Source: Lepidodermella squamata (taxonomy: Eukaryota; Animalia; Gastrotricha). Taken from it: a DNA stretch of 64,000 bases. The translations under genes were made by a program, and so were the position numbers. This document shows positions 1 through 26,334 of this stretch, piece after piece; position 1 is the stretch's first letter, and every line of letters starts with the position of its first letter. The stretch covers positions 2,852,001-2,916,000 of the forward strand of contig JBLDXI010000032.1 of assembly GCA_047495785.1 (NCBI GenBank), written 5' to 3'. The notes beneath the pieces were generated by a model. The model worked only from the letters and a program-made list of their open reading frames with translations, was not told the DNA's origin and did not search any database.

Positions 1-1802
1 GTCCGCGCTAGGGTGACGAGCGCCTGATGCTCCCAGCACGATGTTCTGCTTACCGCAGTCTTCACTACGGCACAAAACTTTGGTCTTGGCCCCATTCTTC
101 AGCAACGCATTCATTAATTCGGCGATAGTTTTTACAGGGCATTGCGACAGAGACAACGTGTTGGCCATTCGCATGACCAAGCATAGATCGCTGGTGTAAT
201 TGGCATCGTTGACAACAGCCCCTCGTTTGAGAAGAAGCTCGACCATTTTAACCGTGTTAGGACCGCATTTCATCTCGCCATCGCCGTTGATCGCGGCAGA
301 GATTGGTTGAATGTTGCATGTTTTATCAGTAGTTTCATGTTGTTTCGGGCAGGCTACGGAAGCATTGTTATAAATTAGGTATTCAACCTTTCCTAACAAG
401 CCAAGTGATGCTGCGGCCTCTAACGGTGATATGCCACTATTGTCTTCCGCGTCAAGTTTTGCCCCGCCTTTGATCAGTCTGGTTTTGTACATTTGAATTT
501 TTATCAACTTTTAAGTCTGATTTTATGAGAAGTAACTTTAGGTGATTTAATTGTTTGTTTTACCTGTTCATGGCTGGAATGGTTCCCAAGTTGGTTCGAA
601 CAGCTACGTGCATTGGAGTCTGGCCAAAGTTATTTCTAACGTTCGGATCCAGCTTCATGATTTGAAGCAGATCACCGACCATACCGTCGAAGTTGTTTCG
701 CGCCGCATAGTGCAGCGCTGTATTTCCGCCCTTGTCCGTCGCCATCACATTTGCACTGTACATATTAAGTAGCTGCGCGATTTTTCTTCGGTTATTTATT
801 GCCGCTAAAACGAATGAGGTGCGTCCGTAATGGTCTTTCTCCTCAATATCAGCACCTCCGTCCAACAAATGCTTCAATGCGGAAAGTTTTCCCAGCTCAA
901 CTGCGTAGTGAATGGGTGCAAATTCTTCGGGGGTCGAGTCATTCCAATCAATTATAATCTTCATAACATCTTCTCGAAGCAGCAATTTGACGACGTTGAC
1001 GCTTGAATTCCCATAGATGACCGCGATGTGTAAAATATTCCTGTGCCGGCTGTCCACTTGTCTGTACGTGGCATTCAATGCACCTCTTTCTATGAAAAAT
1101 TTGACGACGTTATACGATTGACTTCGAACAGCGATGCGAAAAGCTGTATCTCCATTTTGATCTCGCTTGTTCTCCATACTCGGATCTTGCTCAAGGGTAG
1201 CATTTACGGCTACAACGTCATCACGAGCCGCTGCTTCGTGTAAATTGGCGATTAGAGCGGCTGTTATGTTGTAGTCGACTTCGTATTCGTCGTAGTTGGG
1301 TAAGACGCTGGGATATAAAGAATTTTGCGATGCAGTTGTTGTTACTGTGGTTGCACTGGTAGTCGAGTCATCGTCATTAAAATCATTCATTGTGTGACCA
1401 CTTAAAAGTCCAATCCAATGCGCACGCTGATTGGTCAATCGATCGTTGCTATGACTCCCGGATGAAACGTTCTGTCGTGCGATCCATAAGATTTTTTGCA
1501 ACAAGTGTTTTTTGCCGCAGCAATTTACCACAATTAATATGGAGTTTACGCTCGTGGTCAATGGAAACCGGGCAGAGGGTGTGGCAAGGTCATTTTTTTC
1601 ATAAATATAAAATAATTTATTAGTGGATCGCACGACGGAAATGTTTCATTCCGGAGTCATTAGCTACGATAAATTGACCAATCAGCGTGCGCCCCAAGGT
1701 TCAACTTACCAGTGGTTCCACAATGTTATCGCCCCCGTCTTCATCCGCTCGTATCGGAGCCACCACCATGCAAATGAGTAAGACAAGTTTGCAGATTATC
1801 AT
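1..1802 (-). CDS. Secreted ankyrin-repeat protein type A, copy 1 (3' end outside window; exon 1 interrupted by a 343-bp element)
   Basis: ATG at 1802 gives signal-like MIICKLVLLICMVVAPIRA. ORF 560-1633 has ankyrin repeats (GDTAFRIAV, PIHYAVELG, GNTALHYAA, GQTPMHVAV). Intron near 480-562. Closely similar to 11522-13401. Confidence 0.8.
1383..1725. mobile_element. Non-autonomous foldback/MITE-like element in a coding exon
   Basis: About 105-bp imperfect inverted repeats (cattgtgtgaccact...gtgcgatcca / tggatcgcac...agtggttccacaatg). Absent from the paralog near 13330. Precise removal restores the frame (D-N-F-N-D-D-D-S). A similar terminus occurs near 37015-37041. Confidence 0.85.
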
Positions 1803-2205
1803 TTCAAATCGCGCTCAAACACGGGCAAAAGAAAACTCAAAATGTAAATGAAGCAATGAAAATGAAGTTTATGCTATATTCTCGTGGTTACTTTTTAGTT
1901 ACACGTAATATGCGATGATAACGTTAATTTTCATCGCCTCATTTCGTGATTGTCATGCATTTTTTCAATATCAAGCTGCAATCTAATCAGGCTATAAATA
2001 ATTTGAAATATTCCTCAAAACACCTCCTACGAGCACGCATGCGAAGCTCATTAAAATTCGTGACTAGTCAGCTTGTTGCATTAATTACATTCCCTGGACT
2101 CCAGTACAAGATGTCGCCTGATTGTTTTTGAAATAAACAAGGCGATCAGGCCATTAAAATCTGTGTTAACCTCAAGCGTTTTTAAAGTTTGTTTCTAGTT
2201 TCAAA
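1803..2205. promoter_or_regulatory. Putative bidirectional promoter between ankyrin genes A1 and B1
   Basis: About 400 bp between two divergent ATGs. Blocks are conserved in the duplicate at 13402-13785 (tttcaatatcaagctgcaatctaatca, ttaaaattcgtg, tccagtacaagat). Confidence 0.55.
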
Positions 2206-3916
2206 ATGGCAGTTAGATTGTTGTCAGATATCTTGTTGTCAGTGGTAGTTTTCATTTGTGCGGCCGCCGATGAGTACGAGACAGATTTCGGGCGATCTAT
2301 GTCGTTGGTCGTGCAGTTACACGAGGCAGCGGCGAAAAATGACGTAGCAGCAGTGCGGTTCGCATTGGCCCAGGACCCGCTCGTCATAAACACGCGCGAT
2401 AGTAACAGTGAAACCGCGCTTCAAATCGCCGTTCGGACGAACTCGATCGACGCAGCTTGGCTACTAATGAATAAGAATTCGCTGGATTCAGCAGATCATC
2501 GAACGGCGTCTGGGGCGACCCTGCTCCACGTGGCAGTTCGAAACGGTAACTTGTCTTTGGTAAACTTACTCACCCGTGAACGCCAGATGTGGATTAACAC
2601 CGCTGATCCAACGAATGGATCGCAGCCACTCCATGACGCTGCAAAGCTGGGCAAGCTTGCTATTTTGAAAAGTCTCTTGGAGAAAGGTGCTCAAGTGGAA
2701 GCAACGGATTCAAGCGGCCGTACTCCGTTATTGGTCGCTGTTTATGAGAACCAACAGAGCGTGGTCGCTACCTTACTGGCCTACTACAACGCCAACATTA
2801 AAGCAACTGACAACAGAGGTTTAACTGTAGTTCACATCGCTGCTGAAAGGAATTACGTCGACCTGTTGAAACTACTGCTGAAGGACAGCCGCGTCTCAGC
2901 GCGGATTAAATCGAGAAATAACTCTCGCGAACCTCTCCACACAGCTGTTGAGTCGGATTACGGCAACCTAGAGGCTATGCAAGTCCTTGTTGACAATGGC
3001 GCTAATGTCAGAGCGATTGATTCTTCACAAGATACGCCGCTATCTATCGCAGCTGGGAAAGGAAAACTATCAAAAATTGAATTCCTTACTCGAAACGAAA
3101 CGGCTGTTATCTGCCCACCAAATCTGCAATGTGGCAACGACCCGCTCAGCGCTGCTATCCTGCAACAGAGTAATACAACAGGTTGCAGCGAGCTGATGAT
3201 CGATACGGTTGAGTTGCTTCTCAGCCGGGGGGTCGGCGTGAAACAGGCGAATTTCAACAGCCACATCTGTGAGGTCATGCGAATTGCGTCTAATAATGAC
3301 AACGGGCGGTGTCCGATTATTTGGGTCGCGCAGTTGATATACGCGTTCACAAGCCGTGGGGTGAAAACAGCAGTCATGTGCAGCTATCGAGACTGTGGAG
3401 ACAAGCCCATCTCATCGAGTCGAACTGGAGCTAGGCATCCGAAAGTTGATCCATACGATTTCCGAGTTTGCTTGGATCGTCGACCCGACATAAGAGCAGC
3501 TCTGAAATACTTGGTTAATATTACGAATGACATGGACGCTACTCAAGAAAACGGAACTGCGACATGGAAAAATAGCAAAACGCTCGGTAAGTTAGGTAAT
3601 AATTGCCTTCAAAATATTTAAAAGCTTTTTCCTCAGCTCTTCAAAATATGAAGTGTGCACCGATCTGCTCTTATACCTGCGCGCCAGGTGAGTGCGGTGA
3701 CCTAGTTTCAGACACATCACTTTATTTCTGTTTTTCGCAGAAAATTCTCCTTTCTGGAGTAATCCTACGCTAGACGGCGTCGACGATGATCTGATAGAAG
3801 TTCAAGTGCCACTACCAGTTCGTAGTCCATCTACATCATCTACAACGACTACCCGCCGGCCAAGTTTTTCTGGCTCCGGTTCTCGACGCCTATCTAGCAC
3901 CGGGGTTCGCAAGTGA
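2206..3916 (+). CDS. Secreted ankyrin-repeat protein type B, copy 1 (3 exons: ~2206-3587, 3638-3687, 3741-3916)
   Basis: Signal-like MAVRLLSDILLSVVVFICAAA, about 8-9 ankyrin repeats and a Cys-rich domain with GARHPKVDPYDFRVCLDRRPDIR. GT-AG splicing adds CAPICSYTCAP and a Ser/Thr/Arg tail ending in TGA at 3914-3916. Confidence 0.88.
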
Positions 3917-4435
3917 TGATGCGTCACCCTGCAATGAATTCGACAGAAAAATTGACATACCTTGTGTAGAAAAAATGTATTTAAATTTTCAGGATGTAAT
4001 TTCCGAAAAATACAGATAGATAAAAACATTATCATTTATTTCAAAGAAAAAATGATAATCTGCAGGCAGTGCAACGACCTGTTGCCCGAACCCACCGAAC
4101 CCAAAATTAATCTACAATTATTTTTAGAACAAAGGTTATAAAAGTTATAAGAAAAATCGCAACAATAGGTATATCTAGCTGTACAGGTGCCGGTGGACAA
4201 TAACTTTACACAAGCTAAAAGCTAAATATTAACGATGGTGTTACGACCCGAGTCCGAAAGCGACCACATCGCGGTCTGGTCGACCAGACCCCGACGTGGC
4301 TATAGGCGATTTCCACGCCGCGCTCTGGTCGACCAGGATGCGACGGGCCTGCTATCTCTCTCATCAAACACCCATGTCGGGCTTCGGCTCGTAGGTGTCG
4401 ACCGAGTTACGGTGGGCTCCAAATCGAGAACAATG

Positions 4436-4789
4436 GACGCGCGCGCGCGCGTGAGCCAGAGCCCGACCGCACTTATTGGCTGAGTTGAGTGGCCGAACAT
4501 TTTTTAATTAACATAAATTTACCAACAAAATGGTGAAGTCACAAGCTGTATGTTCAGTGCGCCTTAACTGACTCGCGATTTTTGTTTCCGCTTGTTTAAT
4601 ACATAATACCTAATAATCGAGCCTTTTTCAAATATTCCGTTATTTTTGTGACTCAAGCTGTGGCTGCTCAGGTGCTAATAGACACTTAAATACATTATTC
4701 CTACTTCGCTTCCACTTAAATTAAAAATAGAATGACTAGTAAAAAGTTGAAATCAAACGTAGTCGGGCTCTGGCTCATGCACGCACGTC
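4436..4789. mobile_element. Probable MITE with short inverted repeats
   Basis: gcgtgagccagagcccgac (~4449-4467) is inverted as gtcgggctctggctcatgc (~4762-4780). AT-rich noncoding interior. No TSD resolved. Confidence 0.5.
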
Positions 4790-5687
4790 GGAATCACCGG
4801 CGGGTCGGAAAATGTGCATTAATTCCGAGTAACATTTAAAAAACGTCATCAGCTTCTGCCTGTGTCTCGCATTCTTCGAGGTACCAGATTTCTTGCTTTG
4901 GTTTTGTGGCCTCAACAAGATCTTCTACGGCCGAACCGTCGCCACCTAAATCCATGAGACGTACTATAGGACGCCGCGGCTTCGAAGCTCTCATTACATG
5001 ACCGCTCGGTTGCTACCCGGCCGTGAATAATTATTCTGTGAATACGAGTTAATTTTATGTCCACGTATTTCGAAATTCAAAATTTTTTAAATGTCAATAA
5101 TTAAAAACTGCTGAGAATTAATTTACAGCAAAAGATCGGCGAGACGCTGTGTAAAGATGTGTTTATCTTGTTGATCTTAAGCAAAAAATAGGCTTAAGAT
5201 GATTGCAAAAAATGTAATGAGATGATTCATTGGTCGAGTTGGACTTTGGATCTGATTAAAAATATCACGCTTTTTCTGATTTTCTGAGTGCCGCGGCGTT
5301 GTTGCCAAGAGTACGTCTCATGCCTGAATCCTTCTTGCCAGTATCTTCTTCGACCGGAGAATCTATCAATTGATCACTAGAATCGATCGATTGATCAAAT
5401 TCCTCATTTTCAACAGAATGGAAACTTTCGTCCATTATCGAAAGCAAAATTATTTGACAGTATATATTTTTTTATTAAAAAAGTTTGCTACATTCACCCT
5501 CATTTCTGCGACCGTCTGCGACCTGCTGCGTCATAGCACGCGTTTGCGCAGCGGAATAGCCGAAAGTGCGACGGATTACGTTTAAGTGCTACTTAACACG
5601 CGTTCCTGCTACACTGTTTCGATTATTGCTCCACACGTTCACTCCACAGCGCAACTCCCTTTTCTGCTACGCTCGCACACCCACCTA

Positions 5688-7367
5688 CAGTGCTCCCTCG
5701 TTAGTGGCACCCTCCTTAAAAGAACTCCCTCGTTTGTAGACCGTAATTTTGGACCCTGCTAAATAAATTAGTTGTAAATTTTTAATTAAACAAATTATAA
5801 TTTTTTGATAGATTGAAAAAATTAAGCGTGAAAAATTAAAATAATAAAGCGTTCCTAGAAACCTAGCGGCGCGTTGTCGTGGTTTTGAGAGATCCATTTA
5901 TTTCAAGTTTAGTTCAAACGAGTTGAAAGATCATCAGTGCATTAAGCTGTTCTTGTGCCTTTGAAATGGCTGTGATTATGCAACAGAGTGTGTGGATTAG
6001 CTGCCACTCAAGTCGCGCTGCGAGTCGTCTTGCTTTTTTGTTAAACTTTTCCATCAGAAATTACGCCAGTTTATCAGACAAAATCAGCAATTCATTTCAC
6101 TAACTATAAAAATGCCCGTCAATCTTCTCCTTGATTTGCAGATTTTTCCTCAGGTCAATTGCTGATCAACTAAAAGACTCATCTGAATTGCCCTGATTTT
6201 TCAATTTTTACGTTTTTACCGGCCAGAAAATCTCTTGAAATTTACCAGCATTATTAGCATGATCAAATTAGGATATAAATCGTGATTTTTTTAAGGAAAC
6301 TGAAACTTCAGTTTTCCCAATTTTGTTCCCGGCTGTGTTGCGTAATCATGAAGAATCGCGTCCTGGTTTTACGATTTATTTTAATTTCGATGCATGGATT
6401 TATTCTCATAAAGTTAGGTCGCTTTCATTCGTTCTAGTTGTCCTGAGTTATTGGAATTATTAGCCGATTTTCGATAGTCGATAGGCCTGATCTAACATGA
6501 AACTGGCTGCCAAAACTCTACGATTTCATTGCTCTACGCCTTGGCAATTTTACGGGTTTTTTTCACAACTTTTAATCATTCGATTTTGACTTTGAAAATC
6601 GCAACATCCCGAGGAGGGGCGGCGGGAGCTTCTGCCCGAGTTTTTACCTTGCTCTGATCTTAATAGGCCAGTCGAATGAAAACGAGATCACGCCTGAGAA
6701 GAATTTAAAAAAGAAAAAGTCAGGTTAACCGCGAACAAATTATCGAAAATACATTTTTCATCCCAATTGTTTCAAATTATTCAAATTTTATCATATTATT
6801 TCTTAAAAAATTCTACGAATTTTAGGCGAAGCATGAGTTCTGAATTGAACACTGAATTGTCTTGAGAATGTTAGGCTGAATTTGCTGGTGATTTATTCAG
6901 AAGTATTCTGGTAAATCTTGACCACGGTGGTTGATCTTTTAAGCTGTGATTTCAAATGAAATTTGTTTGCGAAATCGGACGAGCTGGGCATTTTTGAAGT
7001 AAATTGAAATAATGAGATTCCAGGTTTTTTTTATTCTGAGTTCGTTAGCCCCAGGCAGGACTTAAAATCAGAGTAAAAAAACAAGGCCAACCAGTCAAAT
7101 CGAAACCGCCCTGGCAAATAAGAATAAAAACTTGGCGCGGAACTTATGATTCATAGTGTTATTGTTTCACAGCCTTCAGCAAACGAGATTTGTAATGACA
7201 CGTAATCCGTGTCCGTCTCTTTCTGCGCGTTGGCATGGCAACTGTCTTAAGGCGTAGAAACGGTCTATTTTTAGCTTCTGCATTCAATTACAGCCCTCGC
7301 TATAGCTTTCCCTTGTTAAAAGACCGTGTCTGGCTCCCGACCCAGTGCTTTTATCGAGGGAGCACTG
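5688..7367. mobile_element. Non-autonomous Tc1/mariner-pogo superfamily DNA transposon
   Basis: TA|CAGTGCTCCCTCG ... CGAGGGAGCACTG|TA: 13-bp perfect TIR starting CAGT with TA target duplication. No transposase ORF. Confidence 0.8.
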
Positions 7368-7381
7368 TATTTGCAATATAA

Positions 7382-7408
7382 TGAGTATGAGTATGAGTAT
7401 GAGTATGA
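7382..7408. repeat. (ATGAGT)n microsatellite
   Basis: About 4.5 direct copies. Confidence 0.9.
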
Positions 7409-7603
7409 CTGCCATCTGATGATCTAGCCGGACCCCACCTGTGGAACCTATCACGGTCTATCTGGAAACATCTTTTGACACAAAGGAAGGGTCACAACTC
7501 ACAATGGCTAATTGAATCATTCTTTTGACGTAGTATATTTCGCGCCGTAGTCGCGCCGTAGTTGCAGTGTCGTACTCGTGTCGCAGTAGTGCGTCGAAAC
7601 CGA

Positions 7604-7648
7604 TACATTACATTACATTACATTACATTACATTACATTACATTACAT
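7604..7648. repeat. (TACAT)n microsatellite
   Basis: About 9 direct copies. Confidence 0.95.
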
Positions 7649-7655
7649 CATCTTA

Positions 7656-8588
7656 AGGTGGATTCACTAATGTGCGACAGGTACGACACGTGTCGTACCG
7701 TCGCATGCGACTGTCGCAGCTCTGTCGCATCAAATCCGCGGACGACAGCCGAGGGATAGTCACAGTCGTGTGCGCACAAAACAATGACACGCGCGGGCGC
7801 TGAGAAAGTGTCGCGCGCGGCTAATTTTTATATGAAAAAACTTGCAAAAAACTTGTCCAACCAAGTTTTTAACCAGAAAAATCGTTATTTTCGACAGCAG
7901 TTACCCTATTTCCGCGTATTTTCGTCGAAATTTGATAATTCAATTATTTTCACCTAGCACGGCACCACCTCGCGGATTATTGAGGGCGCCAACAACTTTT
8001 TTATTTAAATTCATTAAGGAAGAAATTCGTAGTCTTGATAGAGAATTGTTTAAGTTTTAATTGGTATTAAAGCCGCCATTGTTTTCGAAATTAGCCTTTT
8101 GACAATAGTACGGCGGCCACCGTTTTGTTAAAAATTGTGATGTGGTGTTTCGCGCCTTATAGAGTAATAGTGCGTTGTCTATTCCTCCAGGTTTCGCGCA
8201 CAAGTCCACTGTTATACTTCGATTGCGCGCTTGAAGTGGACCGAACTAGGATGTTGTTTTACCTGCTGTCGGACGATTCTAAGTAGCGTGTCGCACACGC
8301 GAAATTCCACCAAAATCGCGCATGCGATGCGACAGGCCAGATCCATGCGACAAAATCCATTGTTTGAGTGCGCGCGCCCTAGTCGAATCTTGTCGCACGC
8401 ACACATTGTTCTCTGACTAGCGTTTATGAACACTCGGCGCGACTGTCGTACGAAACGCTGATGCGACGGTACCACACGCGACAACGTCGGATAGTATATG
8501 AACAACGATGCGATTTTCGCACCCGACAGTGCGACGGTCGTATGCGAAATATTCGTATCCGAAAATTCGCACATTAGTGAATCCACCT
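7656..8588. mobile_element. PIF/Harbinger-type MITE
   Basis: TTA|AGGTGGATTCACTAATGTGCGA ... TCGCACATTAGTGAATCCACCT|TTA: 22-bp TIR, 3-bp TTA duplication, many subterminal tgtcgca/tgcgaca motifs. Confidence 0.8.
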
Positions 8589-8611
8589 TTATATGCATTT
8601 AACGTCGGCAT

Positions 8612-8949
8612 ATAACCTCACCTCATGATACCTAGGCCGAGGCTCGTTGTTAGCCTCACGCGTAAGTGTTGAGGGAGGACCGCGCTCACATGGCGCTATC
8701 CTGGGTCACACGACGCACCTACAGATCCCTACACCCCTTCTAGAGCGTACGGCGTACTCATGGGTAATGTACACTATCGTACCTCTAGCCTCAAGGGGCC
8801 TCGAGCAATGGTTTCACATTGTCTACTCGAGTATTCAATTTTTTGTCTCACCAGTGGATTGCTAAACCACCGTCGGGCGTCAGCGGGCGTAGAACCCACG
8901 ACCTTATGCACATAGGCTAGCTTCCTTATCCACTAGGCTAGTGCTCCCC
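8612..8949 (-). mobile_element. tRNA-derived SINE
   Basis: Minus strand begins GGGGAGCACTAGCCTAGTGGATAAGG (A box) ... GGTCGTGGGTTCTACGCCC (B-box-like), then a ~250-bp body and a short gaggt-repeat tail. No proper acceptor stem. Confidence 0.65.
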
Positions 8950-9849
8950 AATTGGCTAGTGAAACCGATACAGGAATCGGAATATGTTCAATTCAATTAT
9001 TTCTGGGAAAATAAGCTAACTACTTTTCACATTTCGCATGAAGGTTCTACTTGGGCTCACCCAAGTCCCAAGTCATCCTAAGGTTGTCTCTGATGAATGA
9101 ATGCTAATGTCCTATACTTTTAAAGAATAATTGCGAGATCTCGTGTGCGCTTGAAGTTAAATTACGACAGAGTTTAACTCATTCCCTGCTCACTGCCAAG
9201 GCCCGATATTTTCGGATTCCGTCTAATATGAATGTGATCTTCGAGAATCAAAATTGGAATCATCTGAGTCGTGGGTTCGACAGGATATTTTGGAGTCGAT
9301 TCGAGCTTCGAACACCCATTCACCAGGACTAGAGAGTAGATAGAGCCGCGGGAGCAAAGCAGATTAATGTGAAGACGATAAAGTCTTACTCGTACGAGCC
9401 AGTTGAGTTGCCGCTTCGAAATAGGTCGCGCAGTTAGGCAGTCGATCTTCAACGCGATGCAGCTTGACGATTCGGAGTCGGACCCAAACAAGATCGCCCT
9501 TCTCGAACTGGCGAGTGCTGACGTCTGACGTAGCGGTCGAAGTTTTTGACGTAGTCTCGAGCTTTGTCGAGGATAGCGTGGGCTTGCTCCGCTAGCGTGA
9601 CAGAATGCGCTCAAGTTGAGCCAGGAGCCGGGTGAGTTTCTAGCGGACAACAAGCAGGCGTGAATACGGCGAGAATCATGTGACCGGGCAGCTTGGCCGA
9701 GATGACACCGGTCGACGGGTTGACAGCAGATCGGTAGGCGAAGAGAACGGCGGCAGCACTTTGTCCTAGTGATGACGGATGACGGCGATCGGTTGTAGTC
9801 GCGCGGAGCATATCGATGAGACAGCAGTTGCAGCGTTCGGTATGAGACC

Positions 9850-10450
9850 GTTATGCAAGTCATTCGCATCGAAGTCTCTCCGCTTAAAAGCGTACAAAAC
9901 ATACACTCTTTCACGGCTGGATTTCTGCCCTTCGGTCTACTCACCGTATCACTTAACTGACATTGATAAGCTGGAGGCTGTTCAAGCCCGGTTCACAAAA
10001 CGCCTGTTGTATAGAAGTGACCACTATTCATCGATTGAAGGTGCCTCGTATTATGAAAGATGTAAAAAACTAGGACTGTGTCCTCTTGAAATTAGACGCT
10101 TCCAACATGACCTTGCGCTATGCCATAAAATGTACCTAGGCTGTGTGGATGCTAGCTTTTCAAATATCTTCAAATCCCCGTTTACCAGCTCTTGCTGTTG
10201 TGATGAAACGATTTGAACATCCGAGCTCTCAGTTCAGCTTTACAAGGCGTGTGCGCGCAGCTTGGAACCGGCTGCCCACAAGTATTGTCAATAATTCTCA
10301 TACCGCGTTTTTGCGACATCTTAAATCTAAACCGGATGAACTAGTAGATTTGACGACCTCTGAGGTGAGGCGCCGAGAACTAACCTATTGCTAACTGTTG
10401 TGAAACAAAATGCATAATAAAATCAGAATCAGAATCAGAATCAGAATCAA
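9850..10450 (+). mobile_element. 5'-truncated CR1/L2-like LINE, 3' end of ORF2
   Basis: YKTYTLSRLDFCPSVYSP..DIDKLEAVQARFTKRL..YYERCKKLGLCPLEIRRFQHDL..HKM, then (frameshifted) FTRRVRAAWNRLP. AATAAA followed by an (ATCAGA)n tail at ~10422-10450. Confidence 0.85.
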
Positions 10451-11521
10451 AGATCATCTTTTAGGATCTTTTATAATTTTATTCGTGCCTCTATTCGAAG
10501 AATACCAGAACAAAGCTTCTCGTCATAAAGCGAAGTTGGAACGCGTAACTGGTAGGAATGATCCTTACCATCTCTATTGGCTGGACGCTACTCTTTTCGG
10601 GTTAACAACCAGAGACGGGGGAACGTACGGGGATGTGGGTTGGAGTCCCTCTAAACAATTGTGCTATTAATGCGCTAAATTTGCAAAAGGGAGCACTTTA
10701 AGCTAATATAAAATATTTCATGAATGGACTCGTATGGCAACCTAACGCTGCCTCATCACGGCCGGGACTACCGCGGCCTAATGAGCGACCAAGTTATAGC
10801 GACTAGAGCTATAAGTCTAGAGAAGTCCTGAGGATTTTCCACACGAACTACTTATTCCTGCGCCATATAAGTGATTGAGATGGCTAGACTACGGCCGCGC
10901 GACATCTACTCGACTCCGCTAGCTTCGCTCGCTCCGTCTCGTAGATCTCGCGCCGACGAGGTACGTTAAAGCGAAGTAGTTTCAAAACTCAACTGCAATA
11001 CCTATATCGTTAGCGTTAGTTAGTTCATCACCAATATCATTCGCCAATTTAAAATTAGTGAGGACCGAAAACGCATAATTGTGAATAAGTCATAGGTTTT
11101 TCAATTTTAATATTTGCGGATGACATTTCAGCCGATTTCCGACTTATTGGGCATTGTCAAATTCATGAGAAGTTCAATTAGAAGTACGAAATATGGAAAA
11201 TTTAACTATCGCTAGGTAATATAACTGCGCACAATAAAATTGCGCGAGTTCAGGATCGTGAGCAGCGTTACTCACCGTGCCCTAAACGGGTGCGGATACC
11301 GGGAAAATAAAAAAATAAAACACTAACGGTGGAACGTTTTACGGAGGAGACCGATATTTAGCCAGTCTCCTGCCACAACTTCCACACCTGGTAATTGCTT
11401 TATTTCGTTAAAACCAACTCACATGCAGGGCCACAAGTCCACGCGGATGGCATGGTACATGGCCAAGGAATAATTTTGAAATCATTTTAATTCAATTCAG
11501 TTAGCCTTTTATCCTCAACGT

Positions 11522-13401
11522 TCAACGCCTGTCATTGTTATCGAGTGCAGCTATAGTTTTGTTCGTCCAGATCGACGAAGATTCTTGGTTAAATAAAATC
11601 GAAATTTTAGCTAAGATTTAAATCAACTATTGACCATTTTTACTGACCTGGAGCGCAAGCCCACGTGCAAACAGGTGCGCATTTGTTAACAATAGGTGTC
11701 GTCGTCCTGGTTACGCTCGTAATCTTAACCGTCGGCCGAGTGGTCACTGCAACAGTTTGTGTTGATAGCGAAACTAAATTTCCTGCTTCGCCCGAAGGCT
11801 GAGTGCTTCCCCCAGCAACAGGCTGGGCTCGTGGGCCTGTGCTACCCGTCCGCCGAGTGGTAACTGCAACAGTCGTCGGTGCTGTTGTAAGTACTTCATC
11901 AGTTTTGTTTTGCAAGACGTTCAACACCGATCGGATATCCGGGCGACGGTCCATGCAAACGCGGAAGTCGTACGGATCTGCATTAGGGTGACGGGCGCCT
12001 GATGCTCCCAGCACGATGTTCTGCTTACCACAGTCCTCACTACGGCACAATACTTTGGTCTTGGCCCCATTCTTCAACAAAGCATTCATTAATTCGGCGA
12101 TAGTTTTTACAGGGCATTGCGACAGAGACAACGTGTTGGCCATTCGCATGACCAAGCATAGATCGCTGGTGTAATTGGCATCGTTGACAACAGCCCCTCG
12201 TTTGATGAGAAGTTCCACCATTTTCAGTGTGTTAGGACCGCATTTCATCTCGCCATCGCCGTTGATCGCGGCAGAGATGGGTTGAATGTTGCACGTTTTA
12301 GTCGTAGCTTCACGTTGTTTCGGGCAGGCTACGGAAACGTTGTTACGGATGAGGTATTCAACTTTTCCTAGCAAGCCAAGTGCTGCTGCGGCCTCTAACG
12401 GTGATGTGCCACTGTTGTCTTCCGCGTCGAGATTAGCCCCGGCTTTGATCAGTCTGTTATCACGTTTTTAACTTGAAATAACTTCATTTGATTTAATTGT
12501 TGTTTTACCTGTTCATGGCTGGAATGGTTCCCAAGTTCGTTCGTACCGCCACATGCATCGGAGTCTGGCCAACGGAATTTCTAACATTCGGATCCATCTT
12601 CATGATCTGCAGCAAATCCCCGACCATGCCGTCGAAGTTGTTCCGCGCCGCGTAGTGCAGCGCTGTATTGCCTCCCTTATCTGTCGCTTTCACATTTGCA
12701 CTGTACATATTCAGTAGCTGCGCGATTTTTCTTCGATTATTGATTGCGGCTAAGAGGAATGACGTGCGTCCGTAATGGTCCTTCTCCTCAATATCAGCGC
12801 CTCTGTCCAAGAGATGTTTCACAACGGAAAACTTTCCCAGCTCAACCGCGTAGTGAATGGGTGCAAATTCTTCGGGGGTCGAGTCGTTCCAATCAATTAT
12901 AATCTTCATAACTTCTTCTCGCAGCAGCAATTTGACGACATTGATGCTCGAATTGCCATAGATAACCGCGATGTGTAAAATATTTCTGAGCCGGCTGTCC
13001 ACCTGTCTGTACGTGGCGTTCAATACGCCTCTTTCTATGAAAAATTTGACGACGTTATACGATTGACTTCGAACAGCGATGCGAAAAGCAGTGTCTCCAT
13101 TTTGATCTCGCTTGTTCTCCATACTAGGATCTTGTTCAAGGGTAGCATTTACGGCTACAACGTCATCACGAGCCGCTGCTTCGTGCAGATTGCCGATTAG
13201 GGCGGCTGTTATGTTGTAGTCGACTTCGTATTCGTCATAGTTGGGTATGACGGTGGGATCTAAAGAAGTTTGCGATGTAGTTGTTGTTACTGTGGTTGCA
13301 ACGGTAGTCGAATCATCGTCATAATAATTGTAGTCGTCTCCATCTGCTCGCATCGGAGCCACCACCAGGCAAATTTGGAAGAGAAGTTGAACGATTCTCA
13401 T
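11522..13401 (-). CDS. Secreted ankyrin-repeat protein type A, copy 2 (3 exons, intact)
   Basis: MRIVQLLFQICLVVAPMRA signal, acidic/Thr-rich linker, ankyrin repeats, intron ~12453-12507, Cys-rich domain with GARHPNADPYDFRVCMDRRPDIR, Thr-rich stalk, CAPVCTWACAP, intron ~11585-11647, last exon ESSSIWTNKTIAALDNNDRR*. Confidence 0.88.
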
Positions 13402-13785
13402 TTCAAATCGCACTAAAACACGGGCAAAAGACTCAATGAAGCAATAAAAATGAAGTTCAAGCTACACTCTATCTCGTGGTTATTTTTTGGTTACGAGATG
13501 GCGATGATGAAGTTAAAATTTTGGTGCCTGTTTTCGTGATTGCCATGCATTCTTTTCAATATCAAGCTGCAATCTAATCAAGTTGTAAATACCTTGAAAG
13601 ATTGCACGAAACCCTACAAGCACGCATTAAAATTCGTGTCACCAGCAATTAACCATCTCGCTGCATTAATTACTCTGCATTCCTTGGCCTCCAGTACAAG
13701 ATTTCGCCTGTTTTTTCTTGAAATAAACACAACAAATAGGCCATCACAATTTCAAGCGTTTTTGAAATTTCATTCAAGTTTCAAA
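13402..13785. promoter_or_regulatory. Putative bidirectional promoter between ankyrin genes A2 and B2
   Basis: Homologous to 1803-2205; lies between divergent ATGs. Confidence 0.55.
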
Positions 13786-15495
13786 ATGTTATCTCGATTG
13801 TTCTTGTTGTCAGCAGTGGTTATCATTTATTCGGCCGCCGATGAGTACGAGACAGATTTCGGGCGATCCATGTCGTTGGTCGCGCAGTTACACGAGGCAG
13901 CGGCGAAAAATGACGTAGCAGCAGTGCGGTTCGCATTGGCCCAAGACCCGCTCGTCATAAACACGCGCGATAGTAACAGCGAAACCGCTCTTCAAATCGC
14001 CGTTCGGACGAACTCCATCGACGTAGTTTGGCTGCTTATGAATAAGAATTCGCTTGATGCAACAGATCATCGAACGGTGTCTGGGGCGACCCTGCTCCAC
14101 GTGGCAGTTCGAAACGGTAACTTGTCTTTGGTAAACTTAATCACGCGTGAACGGTCTGGCCAGGGGTGGATTAACACCGCCGATCCAACAAATGGATCCC
14201 AGCCACTCCATGACGCTGCAAAGCTGGGCAAGCTCGCCATTGTAAAAAGTCTCTTGGAGAAAGGCGCTCCACTCGAAGCAACGGATTCAAGCGGCCGTAC
14301 TCCGTTATTGGTCGCTGTTTATGAGAACCAACAGAGCGTGGTCGCTACCTTACTGGCCTACTACAACGCCAACATTAAAGCAACTGACAACAGAGGTTTA
14401 ACTGTAGTCCACATCGCTGCTGAAAGGAATTACGTCGACCTGTTGAAACTACTGCTGAAGGACAGCCGCGTCTCAGCGCGGATTAAATCGAGAAATAACT
14501 CTCGAGAACCGCTTCATACAGCTGTTGAGTCGGATTACGGCAACCTTGAAGCAATGCAAGTCCTTGTTGACAATGGCGCTAATGTCAGAGCGATTGATTC
14601 TTTCCAAGATACGCCGCTATCTATCGCAGCTGGGAAAGGGAAACTGTCAAAAATTGAATTCCTCACTCGGAACAAAGCGTCTGTTAACTGCCCACCTAAT
14701 CTGCAATGTGGAAACGACCCCCTTAGCGCTGCTATCCTGCAACAGAGTGATGCAACAGGTTGTAGCGAGCTGATGATCGATACGGTTGAGTTGCTTCTCA
14801 GCCGGGGGGTCGGCGTGAAACAGGCGAATTTCAACAGCCACATCTGTGAGGTCATGCGAATTGCGTCTAATAATGACAACGGCCGGTGTCCGATTATTTG
14901 GGTCGCGCAGTTAATTTACGCGTTCACTAGCCGCGGGGCGAAAACAGCGGTCATGTGCAGCTATCGAGACTGCGGAGACAAGCCTATTGCAACGAGTCGA
15001 ACTGGAGCTAGGCATCCGAAAGTTGATCCATACGATTTCCGAGTTTGTTTAGATCGCCGGCCTGATATTCGAGCAGCTCTTAAATACTTAGTTAATATTA
15101 CGAGTGACATGGAAGCTATTCAAGGAAACGGAACAGCGACATGGAAAAATAGCAAAACGATGGGTATGTTTGGAACTAATCGCCTTCAGAAGTTGAAAAC
15201 AATTTTCATTGTTCCTCAGCTCTTCAAAATATGAAGTGTGCACCGATATGTTCTTACACCTGCGCACCAGGTGAGTGCGGTGACCTAGTTTCAGACATTG
15301 CTTTATTTCTAATTTCTCGCAGAAAATTCTCCATTCTGGAGGAATGCTAAGCTTGACGGCGTCGACGATGATTTGATTGAAGTTCAAGTGCCACTACCAG
15401 TTCGTGCTCCATCTACATCATCTACAACAACCCGCCGGTCAAGTTTCTCCGGCTCTGGCTCTCGCCGCCTATCTAGCAGCGGCGCTCGCAAGTAA
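13786..15495 (+). CDS. Secreted ankyrin-repeat protein type B, copy 2 (3 exons, intact)
   Basis: ATG at 13786 (caaaATG) gives MLSRLFLLSAVVIIYSAA. Close paralog of 2206-3916 with the same introns. TAA at 15493-15495. Confidence 0.88.
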
Positions 15496-15878
15496 CGACG
15501 CGTCACCCATCAATGGATCAGACGGAAAAATTGATATACCTTGTGCAGAAACATTTTATTCTAATTTTCAGCATTTAATTTCCGAAAAAAACAGATAGAA
15601 ATGTTGGGAATTTAATCTTTCGCCGGTTTTTTTTAAGATTGAGGAGTTCTCACTTGTTATTATTGTGGCGCGACCTTCTGTCGAAAATGAGTTCAGATAA
15701 GCATAACTTATTTAAAAAAAAATTCAGTATCGGCTGTTTATTTCAGGGGCATTTTATCACACCTTCATCACGCCATGCACCGGCAGCTTGCAATAAAGCA
15801 ATGTTTTGCGACAAATCGCCAATCACCGCGTAAACACTCTGGTCATGAGACATTCCTAGCCTATTCAACCTGTAAATC

Positions 15879-20097: not shown

Positions 20098-23000
20098 ATG
20101 ATATTGAAAAACAATGCAATTTACGGGCTGATAATTTTTTGCGGATTCATTCTAACAACTTTGGGCTGTAATACTCCATCTTATTGGTTTTGGGGCCCGA
20201 ATACAAAATGGCCGGCCGAGGGCGTTAAATATCGATTTGAAGGTATTTCATATTTTATCGTATCTGCTTTTGGCATCCAAGTATTTTTTAGCTAATATAA
20301 ATGAAACGGAGAAGCAGCTGATTCGCGACGGAATTTCCATGTGGACATCAGTGACTTGCATCCTATTCACCCAGAGAGACGACCTTCCTAGCAATGAAAA
20401 TGGCGTCATTTTCAATAAAACAGATGCCGGGTTAGTTTTTCAGCTTTTTTGAGAAAGGCGGAAGTGTGAATTTTGTATATTCCTTAAAATTATCGAAATG
20501 ACAATGAAAGGAAGAAACAGTACTCAGATTTTCAGGTTTTTTTGTGATTTTGAACATTTTGAACCTTTAAAATTGAGTTCCCCAAATAGTAAAACTCTAT
20601 TAATTCTCCTTTCACCAGAGAATGCATCTCGGACTATGGCATGTATGGTGCTACTCCTCAGCAAGTTTTGCTTACCCCGGCTTGCTTGAAAGTAACTTCA
20701 CCCAGCCCTTGGTTTTCACTTTCCCTAATCAATTTTTGCTACAGAGTCCTGGTGAAATCGCTCATGAAATCGGCCATATTCTTGGATATGTAAGCAATTT
20801 GTGAATGTCATAGGAATTGATTGCCAAAGCTAATGATACCTTAAATAGACTGATGAACATCGAATGCAAACTCGCGATAATGGTGTCAAAATTAATTTAA
20901 CAAATGTTAAGCCGTAAGTTTTTTTAAAACGAATTTCAGTGGCTTAAGGGAAAACCTGGATTTTCAAGAAAAAATATTCCAGAAATTCGAAAAAATTCCA
21001 AGTTTTTGAACCAAAATTCCTTTATAATTAACTTTAATTTAATTTTAAATATGTTTAAGATCCGACTATTATTTATTTGAAAAATCGCCGCAACTTGTCA
21101 ACAATGATCAGAAGTCTACCCTGTACGACTACTGGTCTATAATGCAACAAAAACCAACGTATAAAAGCATTGATGGGAAGTCGCTCACGATTGTTCCTAA
21201 CGACTTGTCCTACTTGTCTGTTATGGGCCAGCGAAACAGAATTTCCTACGACGAAGGTCTACTTATGTCGATATTGAGCGATTGCTCCGGTTAAACACCA
21301 ATTTTACAAATTCTGCGATACAATTAATTTTCCTTTTCAAGCATCCGGCACTAACTGCAACGGCCATGGCTATGCTAAGGGGTTGGATTGTGTGTGCGAA
21401 CCCGGATACGACACAACGACCAATTGTTTAACCCTGGTTTCCAACGACAACCAGATTTGCGGACCGGGTTCAAATGAAATTACCATGGCCGGATGCGAAA
21501 CCGGCTCCATCGATTTGCCGTCGGGGAACCCGCCAAAAGGGTCTTCATGTGCTTGGAAAATAACTACGGTGATATAATAATGATGAATTATCTTCGAATT
21601 ATCTTTAAAATTGAAATTTTTCTCTTCTTGAAGACCGGTTCTGGTCTTGCTTTTGGTTTCGAGTCAAAGCCATTGAGAAGCAGCCGAAACTGCTCGATAT
21701 CCGGTAAGTTGTTCAATGTTCACTGGGTGGTTATTTTTTAATTTAATTCCTAATTTTAGGGCTAATTTGCGACGATTACGTTCAAATTTATGATTCTAGC
21801 CACTTGAAAACTCTACGGTATCAGCTGAAATGTGTTTGCAGTTACTGAAGTTAATTTCTTTTTATTCAGCTTCTGCACGTGCGGTATCAGTTCTGGGCGA
21901 GTTTATACAACGACTTCAACCACAATATTTGTCAACTTTTACAAGAGCACAGACGAGAGTTTCTCTCCGTCTCGGCTTAGTTTTTACTCCTCCTGTAATG
22001 GGGTTCCGGCCAGCAGGCTGACTCGTGAATGCCGAATTACTGAGACTGGTTACGACTATGAAGGACGGCTAATTGGTTATGCTGCTAACGGGCGGAAATG
22101 TGGCAAATGGCCCTTCCCCAAACCAGGTAACACTGAGTTCGACTTTCCAAAGGCGATTGTGCCTGCATTCAGCGTTTGCCGAAATCCAACATCGCAACCT
22201 AAGGCGTATTGCTACGAACAACGTTCGAAAGCCGCATCTCCTTGTCATATCAGAAAATGCGGTGAGCTTTCATGTTAAAATCCGGAAAAATTTTTAATTT
22301 TTAATTTTTACAGAACCCTACGTTCGGTGTGTCACAAGCGATAAGAGAAAATTCGCGGGTTGCCGTCCATTGTCCACTGGTTGCCAAGTTGGCGATACGC
22401 GGGTAATTAAGCTCATTCTGGACAACTATAATATAATATAGAACCTTCCACCCATCAGCTTGTTCCATTCGATGCCAGTAAGTCTCCGTCCGAACTCGTC
22501 TACATCGATCACATGGCATGTAGATACGGAGTAGGTCATTTTTATGAACTTATTCAATTTAATTTCCTTAAATGCTGAATTATTTTCAGAGAGCAAGATG
22601 CTGCTTCTCACTGCAGGGTGGAACTTACCAAGTTAGCTCCGGAGCCGCGAAATGTGGAAGCAATCAATTCCAAGTATTATAATTCAATTATTTCTAGGAT
22701 GGCGACTAAACAATCGTTTTAGCTTGCCATTTTCGATAAACTCTACCCGGTGAAATTCCGTGAGAATTACGACGAAGCTGCTGAAAAATGCAACAGCAAC
22801 GTAAGTAGGACTGAATTGGGAGATATTTTTAATTTATTTTGTGAGCAGACAAGCGTGAAACGGTGTTCAGATAACAATGGCGCTATCGTCACTTGTGTTG
22901 GCGTCCAACAACAGTGTCCCAACGGGCTAACGGCTGGTTCGACATCTTATTCGTCTTTCGCAAACTGTAAACTTGGGGTAAGATCAAAAACTCGTTAGAT

Positions 23001-24033: not shown

Positions 24034-25740
24034 GAAATGTCAATTTTTTTCTCAGAATTTCTGAAGAAAAAAGGCATAACCAAATTACTTTAGTATCCAC
24101 CTATCGTTCAACTGCTGAGTGGCGTCGATCGTGTAGACCTTTGGCCACTAAACTTACCTGGCACTGGGATGAACCGAGTTCAGCAAGTCGGTCGCCCCAG
24201 GGCGAGGCGGGCCATTGCACTGCGGTCCGCTGACCCCTGCGCTCTGCCTCATCGGTGGAGTCGGGTGCAAAATATTTCACTTGGGTACCGGCGTTCGCGC
24301 CACACCCGTAAAATCACGAACAATTTCGATAAACCGATATTTCAGATGTTACTTGAGCATCTTGGCAAACGACGGGCCACGAACTCATGAATCTTAGCTT
24401 TTCCTTGGATGATTTCAGTCTTGATGAGTAGATTACAAAGCCGTCAAAAAGTCATTTTCGGCCAGGTATTGACACACAGCAGTTTTGAGTTAAGCCGCAC
24501 ACGAACCGCGCCAAACAATTTTGTCCGGCTAAATGAAAGTCCGGCTTAACGCAACGTTAAGTACGCGCAAAGTCAAAATTCAAAAAAGTAGGGTATCTGC
24601 GGGCAAGATGCCCCTCACTTTGGGCTGAGTTCTTGCGCAGCGTTTGCCAGGTGGGCTGTGCAATAAGAATGAGAAGTGAGGCTTGAAAAAATGCCAAAAT
24701 TTCGAAAATGGACGAGAGTTCAACGATTGGTCACAGCTGACGCCGAATTTCGGAACAATACTCACGCAGGAGTTTCCTATCTTTTCTCACTTATTTATCT
24801 ATGAAATGCGGGCGAGGGGGCTCATGTCGCTTCTCGAGTGCTCTGTTACCGTAGAATGGTAATTTTGACAAAAAGGTAAAATTTTGAAAAAATTCCACAA
24901 AGCTAATTCAGGTGAATTCTTTGCAAATTTGCACGCCGTTAGAATTCCCTTGTCCTGGGCATAACTGTTGTATTTTATCTACGGATTCAGGTAATTCACC
25001 TGAGAAAAAAGGCACGAAAGAAAGGTACAATTTTGACAAGCTATTACAACTTTGACAACTCTGCTATGGTAATGCCCCTTTATTAACTTGATCATCTAGC
25101 GCCAGCAGTGATTCATCGCGTGCTTGGTGAAAATTGAGATTTTTTAATTGATTTTTAAGTTTTCTTTTAAAACGTTGTTTTCAAGCTATGTAGATATTTT
25201 TCCAGAATTTTAGAAAGTCAGCCGCAGTTAGGTCATTAGGAAGAAAAAAGCTATCAAACTTGAACCTGTCAAAATTGTACCCGTCTCCGTAACCATAAAC
25301 GCCAGAGTTTCAGGCATCACGCCGTCAAGGAAAAGCTCACATGTAAAGCAACAAAGGCGGTTTTTAGGGTCAGCGTTTTGCGACAAATCTAACGATACCA
25401 AATTTGTGGTATTAGTGTACCCGGATGAGGTGGCCGAAATTAGGGCACTCTATTCCTAATTCCGGCCGGGTGTCTGGGTGACTAAAAAATTAGCCATAAA
25501 TCAAGGTAAAATCGTCCGGACTTGCGGAAAGCGGCATTCGATAGCCAAAGAACGGCTCATTTAATTCTGCTTTTGCCGAATATTTTCTAAACATTCACCT
25601 GGCTGGAAAAGTAGGAAAAGCCTGAAAAGCGGCCGAAATTAGGGCGGGGTGCTCTATTGTCCATGGTAATCCTGGTAATCATGCCGCTGCTGATGTCTAT
25701 GTTGGGGCATCAGGTTTTAACGCAGCGAGAAACGCGTGAC

Positions 25741-26083
25741 TTGGAGGAAGCTGAATACGCGTGGCAAAATCCGAGTGTTACAGAACGCCTCGAGCTTCAA
25801 GAAGTAGGCTACAAAAAATATCGATTACTTCTGATTCATTTTGATTCATTTCATTTGGAGGAAGCTGAATACGCGTGGCAAAATCCGAGTGTTACAGAAC
25901 GCCTCGAGCTTCAAGAAGTAGGCTACAAAAAATATCGATTACTTCTGATTCATTTTGATTCATTTCATTTGGAGGAAGCTGAATACGCGTGGCAAAATCC
26001 GAGTGTTACAGAACGCCTCGAGCTTCAAGAAGTAGGCTACAAAAAATATCGATTACTTCTGATTCATTTTGATTCATTTCATT
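25741..26083. repeat. 114-bp tandem repeat, 3 identical copies
   Basis: Unit ttggaggaagctgaatacg...gattcatttcat starts at 25741, 25855 and 25969. Confidence 0.95.
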
Positions 26084-26334
26084 ATTATTATTTGCATCAC
26101 CATCTTTTCCCTATTAACCGGATCGTATCGTAAAATATGCTATCTTTTTGATATTTTCTAGAAATATCAAAAATTCCCTGCTTGTAAGAAGGTTTCATGT
26201 GGGGTTTTTGGTGATATTGTCCGGAAAATGTCACCAAAAACCCCACTTGTCAAGCACACAAGAGACAACCCAAAAAAGTTCAAGAAACACTCTTAAAACG
26301 ATTTTATTAAGAATCAACTTTTTGGTGTACAAGC

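Follow-up and report, generated by a model that had tools for sequence, protein, structure and literature searches.

A tandem array of divergent gene pairs encoding putative secreted ankyrin-repeat proteins with an orphan cysteine-rich cap

Overview

The window (the whole 64,000-nucleotide stretch of DNA analyzed here) contained two copies of a cassette in which two ankyrin-repeat genes, A and B, were transcribed divergently, and two further cassettes were located just upstream of it (G000:C32:2840324-2850555), giving four A<->B cassettes in tandem with eight genes. On balance, we favor a joint interpretation: (i) the array is a lineage-restricted locus in which one divergent gene pair is present in four tandem copies and (ii) its eight proteins, judged by their sequence features, enter the secretory pathway and are most likely released outside the cell. 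The best reading of these products is that they would act as secreted, presumably glycosylated, disulfide-capped ankyrin proteins that probably bind ligands.

Cassette array and paralogy

Self-BLAST aligned window positions 9-4020 with 11984-15599 at 87-93% identity, and thus the whole A<->B cassette was duplicated within the window. The sequence-only reading had counted this cassette twice: the wholesale duplication stood, but the true count is four in tandem. The A and B proteins were collinear over their full length and shared 35-43% identity, in keeping with the earlier description of the two as diverged paralogs placed head to head about 400 bp apart (see Table 1 for the distances between start codons). 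In a tree of the array genes, the A clade and the B clade were each monophyletic with support of 100/100, which indicates that the pair was duplicated as a unit; no lone A or lone B was found in the 121-Mb genome, in which copying had occurred only as the A/B pair. The dS between copies ranged from 0.23 to 0.79. The C-terminal domain and the CAPxCxxxCAP cysteine motif were absent from the 121-Mb genome outside the eight array genes, and the next-best ankyrin matches in the same genome displayed 30-40% identity with coverage of the repeats alone.

Gene structures

The coordinates of the window genes and of their parts are listed in Table 1. Complete reading frames were found in all eight genes, across which the GT-AG splice sites were kept although the intron sequence itself had diverged. 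The predicted A and B proteins were 524-609 residues in length, with about 20-60 residues ahead of the first repeat. The intergenic region between A and B measured 0.4-0.6 kb across the cassettes, and its sequence was conserved between the two youngest cassettes only.

Table 1. Positions of the A and B gene parts, the intergenic regions, and the inserted MITE (window coordinates unless a contig position is given)
Feature	Position	Strand	Description
A1 (A_c3) first coding piece	1710..1802	-	Start codon and signal-like peptide; ends at GTAAGT within the inserted MITE
A1 main exon	564..1426	-	Acidic/Thr-rich N-terminal stretch and ankyrin repeats; upper bound is an in-frame candidate acceptor; unaffected coding sequence from 1387
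A1 exon 2	478..<1	-	Last ankyrin repeat and Cys-rich C-terminal domain; leaves the window and ends at G000:C32:2851667
A1 exon 3	G000:C32:2851540-2851601, outside the window		Exon 2-3 intron removed in X1 contig
MITE	1388..1725	.	338 bp with ~100-bp terminal inverted repeats; inside the A1 coding exon just past the signal-like peptide
A1/B1 intergenic	1803..2205	.	403 bp between start codons; presumed bidirectional promoter
B1 (B_c3) exon 1	2206..3586	+	Predicted signal peptide, then ankyrin repeats and the Cys-rich C-terminal domain (3073-3519)
B1 exon 2	3637..3687	+	CAPxCxxxCAP mini-exon; preceding 50-nt intron removed in X1 contig
B1 exon 3	3741..3916	+	Hydrophilic tail, first acidic and then Ser/Thr-rich; stop codon 3914-3916
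A2 (A_c4) exon 1	12509..13401	-	Predicted signal peptide, acidic/Thr-rich stretch, ankyrin repeats
A2 exon 2	11648..12453	-	Last ankyrin repeat, Cys-rich C-terminal domain (11907-12365), Thr/Pro-rich stalk, CAPxCxxxCAP motif
A2 exon 3	11522..11583	-	Short hydrophilic tail, stop codon
A2/B2 intergenic	13402..13785	.	384 bp between start codons, common to both genes
B2 (B_c4) exon 1	13786..15163	+	Predicted signal peptide, then ankyrin repeats and the Cys-rich C-terminal domain (14650-15096)
B2 exon 2	15220..15270	+	CAPxCxxxCAP mini-exon
B2 exon 3	15323..15495	+	Hydrophilic Ser/Thr-rich tail, stop codon

The MITE found in A1 belonged to a very young, high-copy family: of 284 candidates, at least 40 were full-length copies with 96-99% identity. 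This insertion split the A1 signal-peptide piece from the rest of its exon in the present assembly. A MITE-free form was present in the public DNA-like run X2, in which a contig joined both flanks exactly (L004 2385->2726); no spliced contig across the A1 MITE was seen among the public-run contigs. Because the MITE cuts the exon, A1 would begin with a signal peptide only if the element is spliced out or absent. A candidate splice would join the GTAAGT at 1709 to an in-frame acceptor at 1427/1426; a second AG, at 1402/1401, lies out of frame.

Transcripts, selection, and genomic context

Contigs from public run X1 had the A exon 2-3 intron and B intron 1 spliced out, and a loose end at the end of B1 exon 2 ran on into a B-type exon 3, so that three predicted introns were confirmed; the same introns were retained in the DNA-like run X2. 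The RNA status of X1 is a guess, and this run is a single sample consisting of contigs that carry no strand or expression level. Most X1 contigs resembled cassette 3 at 90-95%, and they would thus derive from paralogs or a related strain and have little bearing on A1/B1 themselves. Spliced A-type and B-type contigs were both present in this one RNA-like sample, which weakly supports the co-expression of A and B proposed by the sequence-only reading. Pairwise dN/dS values of 0.15-0.27 denoted overall purifying rather than diversifying selection. The A and B genes are real, intron-bearing, and constrained, a pseudogene origin being ruled out by the intact frames, the dN/dS values, and the spliced transcripts. 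The genomic neighbors of the array were animal genes (kringle, TRPM, LDL-receptor class A, and 7TM), and bacterial contamination or recent horizontal transfer was rejected on account of the spliceosomal introns, these neighbors, and a base composition like that of the surrounding DNA.

Ankyrin repeats and orphan cap

All four window genes matched the Pfam models Ank_2, Ank, and Ank_4 at E = 1e-34 to 1e-41, with Ank_2 scoring 129-141 bits against a cut-off of 27.3, and no Pfam domain besides ankyrin was detected in them. The eight proteins shared a common layout: about seven Pfam-class ankyrin repeats, two degenerate cysteine-bearing repeats, an orphan cap, a Thr/Ser-rich tail, and C-x3-C-x3-C, with the Thr/Ser/Pro-rich stretch being longer in A than in B. 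The AlphaFold model of B1 exon 1 had a mean pLDDT of 78.5 (mostly 85-97 for residues 30-300) and formed a single curved solenoid continuing into the C-terminal domain, where confidence was moderate (pLDDT 63-86 in the full model and a mean of 66.7 when modeled alone). In a Foldseek search of the PDB, the top matches of this model were ankyrin-1/ankyrin-R, ankyrin-B, and DARPins (E = 1e-13 to 1e-15). A and B belong to the ankyrin-repeat superfamily by both Pfam match and solenoid fold. The binding-face positions varied more among paralogs than the framework did (52% vs. 31-32%, p = 0.01-0.02), and such surplus variability is expected in any ankyrin family.

The full-length B1 protein yielded 771 database matches, all of them generic ankyrin proteins at 20-78% query coverage and none of them a full-length relative. 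Neither sequence nor profile searches disclosed full-length orthology to a characterized family, a result that would have told against the proposal of the sequence-only reading. For the C-terminal domain, (i) no protein scored in a word-based search of 5.8 billion sequences, (ii) a profile run exhaustively against 1.84 billion representatives returned 23 weak multi-stretch matches, the three inspected being ordinary ankyrin proteins, and (iii) a PDB profile search returned marginal DARPin/ankyrin matches over the first 70 positions only; neither this representative set nor the PDB yielded a homolog of the orphan cap. When the domain was searched alone by fold, Foldseek found no PDB match at E <= 0.001, ankyrin came up in the ESM Atlas at TM 0.54, and a wide VIA fold search matched generic helical repeats at Z 6-9, a range that is uninformative for helical repeats; its language-model neighbors were bacterial ankyrin clusters. 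By these comparisons, the cap appears to be without relatives in the databases searched. No secreted or extracellular animal ankyrin family of such a kind was described in the literature searched, part of which was covered by titles and abstracts.

Secretory features

The signal peptides are predictions based on rule-of-thumb criteria and on the way these segments have evolved. All eight N-termini had a hydrophobic core 12-15 residues long, with small residues ahead of a likely cleavage site and an acidic start to the mature protein, and this hydrophobic character was retained with 76-81% of the columns diverged among paralogs. The earlier statement that all four window genes open with a signal-like peptide agreed with this layout in every one of them, but for A1 it is conditional on removal or absence of the MITE. 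In the full spliced models, the 19-residue Kyte-Doolittle mean after residue 30 peaked at 1.02-1.39; since no 19-residue window past the N-terminus reached 1.4, small 3' exons included, no later transmembrane segment is predicted, in line with the sequence-only reading. A hidden C-terminal membrane anchor was considered and rejected, the extra 3' exons coding for hydrophilic tails. No KDEL/HDEL-type C-terminus was present: A ended in basic residues and B in ...RK.

The mature proteins each contained exactly 11 cysteines, all in the C-terminal third and all occupying columns invariant across the eight proteins (11/11): eight were placed in the two degenerate repeats plus the cap, and three in the tail motif. 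The canonical ankyrin repeats had no cysteine in any of the eight proteins. Six N-x-S/T sites were conserved in all four A proteins. The secretory-pathway reading is drawn from the signal-like N-termini, the lack of transmembrane segments, the 11 invariant C-terminal cysteines, the N-x-S/T sites, and the Thr-rich stalks taken together.

Proposed mode of action

From N- to C-terminus, each protein would be composed of a cleavable signal peptide, an N-cap, about seven canonical cysteine-free repeats, the degenerate repeats with the cap, a Thr/Ser/Pro-rich stretch that is probably O-glycosylated, and C-x3-C-x3-C. The eight cysteines of the degenerate repeats and cap probably form four internal disulfides locking the end of the solenoid, whose concave face may bind an extracellular ligand. 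Owing to the three tail cysteines, the total of 11 is odd, and thus at least one cysteine would be unpaired within a chain; the tail cysteines may join chains covalently as A-A, B-B, or A-B. The intergenic region common to A and B spans 0.4-0.6 kb, and the two genes are probably activated together. A further extension, in which A and B would be covalently linked extracellular ankyrin hetero-oligomers and part of a wider set of ankyrin-fold proteins serving extracellular recognition or the matrix, is speculative and appears improbable at present.

Alternative explanations

A and B might instead make up an obligate two-component system with a shared promoter and a specific heterodimer, possibly disulfide-linked via C-x3-C-x3-C, the active unit being a binary effector, a recognition complex, or an adhesive or egg-coat component. 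Both partners were intact in 4/4 cassettes with no unpaired A or B in the genome, the pair was always duplicated as a unit, A and B were alike in their odd cysteine count (11) and in their tail motif, and A-type and B-type spliced contigs occurred in one run; all this would fit such a partnership. However, adjacent genes co-duplicate without any functional link, and the copies are young, so there has perhaps been too little time for the loss of one partner; the intergenic conservation was limited to the two youngest cassettes, and homo-oligomers account equally well for the odd cysteine number. We therefore regard obligate heterodimerization as rather unlikely.

Two other explanations concern where the proteins end up. 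They could be offensive or defensive effectors (venom, toxin, or proteins delivered into prey or host cells) whose ankyrin repeats act on intracellular targets, as those of latrotoxins and bacterial or viral effectors do, and being secreted ankyrin proteins from a tandemly amplified lineage-specific array would suit this role, as would the presence of alpha-latrotoxin at rank 46 of the fold list, a match that ran via the repeats only. No pore-forming, translocation, or enzymatic domain was found, however, the rest of the protein being helical repeat and low-complexity tail; the purifying selection gave no hint of an arms race, and the stalks and conserved glycosylation sites fit a protein remaining extracellular. 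The toxin suggestion of the sequence-only reading also found no footing in likeness to a toxin, pore-former, or enzyme, fold searches beyond the repeats giving generic helical solenoids only, and an effector role is very unlikely. Alternatively, A and B may not be released at all, being held by an uncleaved signal anchor as type II membrane proteins or residing in the ER/Golgi lumen. The first 19-residue window had a mean Kyte-Doolittle value of 1.6 in several copies, which would favor an anchor, but the cores spanned only about 12-15 residues, with small residues at -3/-1 and an acidic stretch after them, the usual layout of a cleaved signal, and the C-termini lacked KDEL/HDEL; retention is accordingly thought unlikely.

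Comparison with known ankyrin systems

Ankyrin-R/B and DARPins resembled A and B in Pfam match, in superposed fold, and in variability at the same binding-face positions. The known solenoid proteins of the ankyrin-R/B type are cytoplasmic or nuclear and have no signal peptide, while A and B differed from them and from DARPins by having a predicted signal peptide, cysteine-free repeats, an eight-Cys cap, conserved N-glycosylation sites, Thr-rich stalks, and C-x3-C-x3-C. Latrotoxins are neurotoxins of widow spiders with about 20 ankyrin repeats in about 1,200-1,400 residues, and their large N-terminal connector and helical-bundle domains form the pore. Alpha-latrotoxin was like A and B in being an animal ankyrin protein that acts outside the producing cell, and it was matched through its repeats (9go9_A); its matched chain had 1,175 residues, against 524-609 in A and B, which had almost nothing before the repeats and a different, orphan C-terminus. 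A and B thus fell outside the latrotoxins by their size, their short pre-repeat region, the lack of any non-ankyrin Pfam domain, and a fold match confined to the repeats. The ankyrin effectors of bacteria, poxviruses, and polydnaviruses are likewise exported by their producer, but they work within host cells and are microbial or viral gene products, while the A and B genes had short GT-AG introns removed in RNA-like contigs and lay among animal genes; the protein-database searches yielded no specific sequence relative.

Ankyrin repeats are among the commonest intracellular binding scaffolds, and natural extracellular versions in animals are, to our knowledge, rare. The present locus suggests how an ankyrin scaffold could suit an oxidizing exterior, through (i) cysteine-free repeats, (ii) a cap that is probably disulfide-locked, (iii) stalks that probably bear sugars, and (iv) a possible cross-linking cysteine motif. 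If the tentative repertoire reading given above were true, an animal lineage would have moved an intracellular scaffold outside the cell, by analogy with the leucine-rich repeats in the variable lymphocyte receptors of lampreys, and the animal may possess a set of extracellular binders unlike any described so far. The strict A/B pairing over three rounds of duplication also constitutes a natural experiment on whether two diverged solenoids work jointly, and the putative disulfide-stabilized cap could interest designers of ankyrin-based binders.

Array structure and gene models

Self-comparison of the window aligned positions 9–4020 with 11984–15599 at 87–93% identity, and each copy displayed two long reading frames, one per strand, with start codons 403 bp (A1/B1) or 384 bp (A2/B2) apart; the duplicated head-to-head cassette described in the sequence-only reading, with its divergent transcription from about 400 bp, was thus recovered. 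That reading had the cassette occurring twice, which was correct for the window and too few for the locus: the search for further cassettes that it had proposed, done in six frames on the window's own genome assembly (121 Mb, 151 contigs), found two more immediately upstream, giving four in tandem (c1 to c4; c3 was A1/B1 and c4 was A2/B2). The C-terminal domain had exactly eight genomic occurrences in this assembly, all within the four-cassette locus, and the CAPxCxxxCAP motif gave eight matches, all at the locus, versus none for its reversed control. A and B were each monophyletic in the maximum-likelihood tree (support 100/100 each), so the A/B split is older than the amplification and the pair was copied as a unit every time. 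The 7.6-kb spacer between c3 and c4 contained overlapping reading frames; one of them, with no Pfam match, resembles the C-terminal portion of a reverse transcriptase from a non-LTR retrotransposon, and it probably accounts for this spacer exceeding the 1–2 kb of the others.

Introns of the A and B genes were all short (48–100 nt), except for a putative intron of A1 spanning a MITE (see below); splice sites were kept in all four copies of A and of B, while intron sequences had diverged. The spliced proteins comprised 524–609 residues. Ankyrin repeats (Ank_2, E = 1e-38 to 1e-41) were the sole Pfam content of the A and B frames in the window, Pfam recognizing nothing in the last 150 residues. 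A and B were collinear end to end at 35–43% identity, these last 150 residues included, in agreement with the paralogy claimed for them.

Coordinates of the ankyrin array and its neighboring features (window positions unless another stretch is named; C32, contig containing the window at 2852001-2916000; L001, stretch with its own numbering)
Feature	Position	Strand	Remark
Two upstream cassettes	C32:2840324-2844381; C32:2846603-2850555		
A1			Three exons, layout as A2; exon 2 crosses the window's left edge
		-	A1 strand
MITE in A1	1388-1725		338 bp
B1 exons	2206-3586, 3637-3687, 3741-3916	+	
Spacer reading frames	9174-10216		
A2 exons	13401-12509, 12453-11648, 11583-11522	-	
B2 exons	13786-15163, 15220-15270, 15323-15495	+	
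7TM family, two-exon genes	L001 242-4141 (-); 15879-16963 (+); 51028-52015 (+)		Both array flanks, again later in the window
Kringle paralogs, single-exon	21832-22278, 31337-31759, 53708-54133	+	One domain each, Pfam E = 3e-06 to 2e-10
Repeat-built frame	25657-26133	+	Three near-identical ~38-residue units
TRPM-type channel gene	56443-60421	+	LSDAT_euk E = 3e-41; TRPM2-like domain E = 8e-20
Four LDL-receptor class A modules, one frame	63161-63607	-	E = 1e-23

Probable secretory character

The N-termini shared one organization: a short stretch that was usually basic, then a hydrophobic core some 12–15 residues long, small residues, and an acidic stretch. In these segments 76–81% of columns differed between paralogs with the hydrophobic character kept, and signal peptides are known to evolve in this way. 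A signal-like peptide had been claimed for all four genes of the window; this was found in A2, B1, and B2, and in A1 only with the inserted element absent or spliced out. The companion claim, that no transmembrane segment follows, was upheld in the spliced models with the added 3′ exons included, all 19-residue Kyte-Doolittle means past residue 30 being below 1.4. The mature proteins each had 11 cysteines in 11 columns invariant across all eight, the C-terminal domain contributing eight of them and the tail motif the other three; the approximately 280 residues of canonical repeats contained none in any of the eight. Six N-x-S/T sites were common to the four A proteins and two to the four B proteins; A carried Thr-rich stretches past the signal peptide and ahead of the tail motif, and B ended in a Ser/Thr-rich tail. 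By rule-based judgement, these combined features would mark the proteins as extracellular glycoproteins.

The coding exon of A1 as assembled here was split right past the signal peptide by a MITE whose terminal inverted repeats measured about 100 bp. Of 284 candidates in the genome, at least 40 were full-length copies at 96–99% identity; this family is very young. A GTAAGT brought in by the element lay 16 nt from its upstream end; there were two candidate acceptors, 1427/1426 (frame-keeping) and 1402/1401 (frame-breaking), and no spliced contig across the element was seen among the public-run contigs. One contig of X2, a public sequencing run, joined both flanks exactly at the MITE ends with 340 letters skipped, so public DNA includes a MITE-free form of the site, and the insertion is likely to be polymorphic. 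Nonsynonymous change in A1 was no greater than in A2 (dN to the A copy of c2: 0.148 versus 0.146).

Fold and C-terminal domain

An AlphaFold model of B1 exon 1, with the paralogs as alignment (mean pLDDT 78.5, pTM 0.73), contained an N-cap plus seven canonical repeats (pLDDT mostly 85–97), continuing into two extra helix pairs and a helical cap (pLDDT 63–86); the closest solved structures were ankyrin-1, ankyrin-B, and DARPins. Conservation within the proteins peaked in the C-terminal domain, where 37% of columns were the same in all eight. Taken alone, it (i) fell among ankyrin clusters in the language-model search, (ii) matched an ankyrin cluster in the ESM Atlas shape search (TM 0.54 over 115 residues), and (iii) returned only generic helical repeats from Foldseek and VIA against PDB. 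A word-based search of 5.8 billion proteins found nothing for it; a profile search run exhaustively over 1.84 billion representatives returned nothing beyond weak multi-stretch matches, of which three examined in full were ordinary ankyrin proteins; PDB sequences matched only its first 70 positions, and those marginally; and the most conserved block, around an invariant run ending in RRPDIR, matched nothing in the sequence searches made. In sequence, the domain is thus an orphan. It is read as a lineage-specific, disulfide-locked terminus that closes the ankyrin solenoid, in preference to a distinct module with a known type of function.

No toxin, pore-forming, translocation, or catalytic domain was detected by Pfam, the AlphaFold model, Foldseek, or VIA, and likeness to latrotoxin was limited to the repeats. 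The ankyrin scaffold itself is well known; in the parts of the literature covered by the search, no description was found of its predicted adaptation to secretion, of a putatively disulfide-bonded orphan cap or tail motif of this kind, or of the strictly paired fourfold array.

Binding face, transcription, and selection

Across the seven repeats, canonical target-binding positions varied among paralogs at 52% versus 31–32% for the framework (Fisher p = 0.012 for B and 0.020 for A), and 7% of binding-face positions versus 27% of framework positions were identical in all eight proteins. This pattern fits ligand-binding solenoids whose specificity drifts from copy to copy. Higher binding-face variability is common to any ankyrin family, and it does not amount to evidence for diversifying selection. 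Pairwise dN/dS was 0.15–0.27 in every A–A and B–B comparison, dS ranging from 0.23 (c3/c4) to 0.79; purifying selection has acted on all eight genes.

X2 covered coding and intergenic DNA of the locus at a uniform depth near 90 and so behaves as genomic DNA. The other public run, X1, labeled only "RNA?", yielded contigs lacking the 65-nt A intron that separates exons 2 and 3 (GT..AG, read on the gene's strand) or the 50-nt first intron of B, and one contig in which B exon 2 was followed directly by sequence matching exon 3 of the c1 copy of B except at one base. None of these joints was seen in X2 contigs, so X1 contains processed A-type and B-type transcripts; this evidence consists of contigs, without expression level, strand, or 5′ end. 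Most X1 contigs were just 90–95% like c3 and derive from paralogs or a related strain. Contigs of both runs skipped about 65 nt 3′ of the A1 stop codon (window −528 to −462; 472–538 of L004, a stretch with its own numbering); this skip had no canonical splice ends and is probably an insertion/deletion difference among paralogs or haplotypes, not an intron.

A functional link between A and B would suit several features, namely the two genes being intact in all four cassettes with no unpaired copy in the assembly, the short divergent intergenic region common to them, their equal odd cysteine count and identical tail motif, and their transcription in a single RNA-like run (X1); joint duplication of neighboring genes is routine, however, the cassette copies are young, and intergenic DNA was confidently alignable between c3 and c4 alone, and an obligate A–B complex is considered improbable.

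Genomic neighborhood

The ankyrin array was flanked by divergent 7TM receptor genes, with kringle, TRPM, and LDL-receptor class A genes nearby. Microbial contamination was rejected: spliceosomal introns and animal-type neighbor genes were present, and base composition was that of the neighborhood. The two-exon 7TM genes had no Pfam match, and their language-model neighbors were rhodopsin-class or Srw-like GPCR clusters. The TRPM-type gene had a single match, 39% identical, in a length-limited protein search, so the lineage is poorly sampled. The three kringle frames look like a dispersed small gene family, and the LDL-receptor class A frame probably represents a single exon of a longer gene leaving the window.
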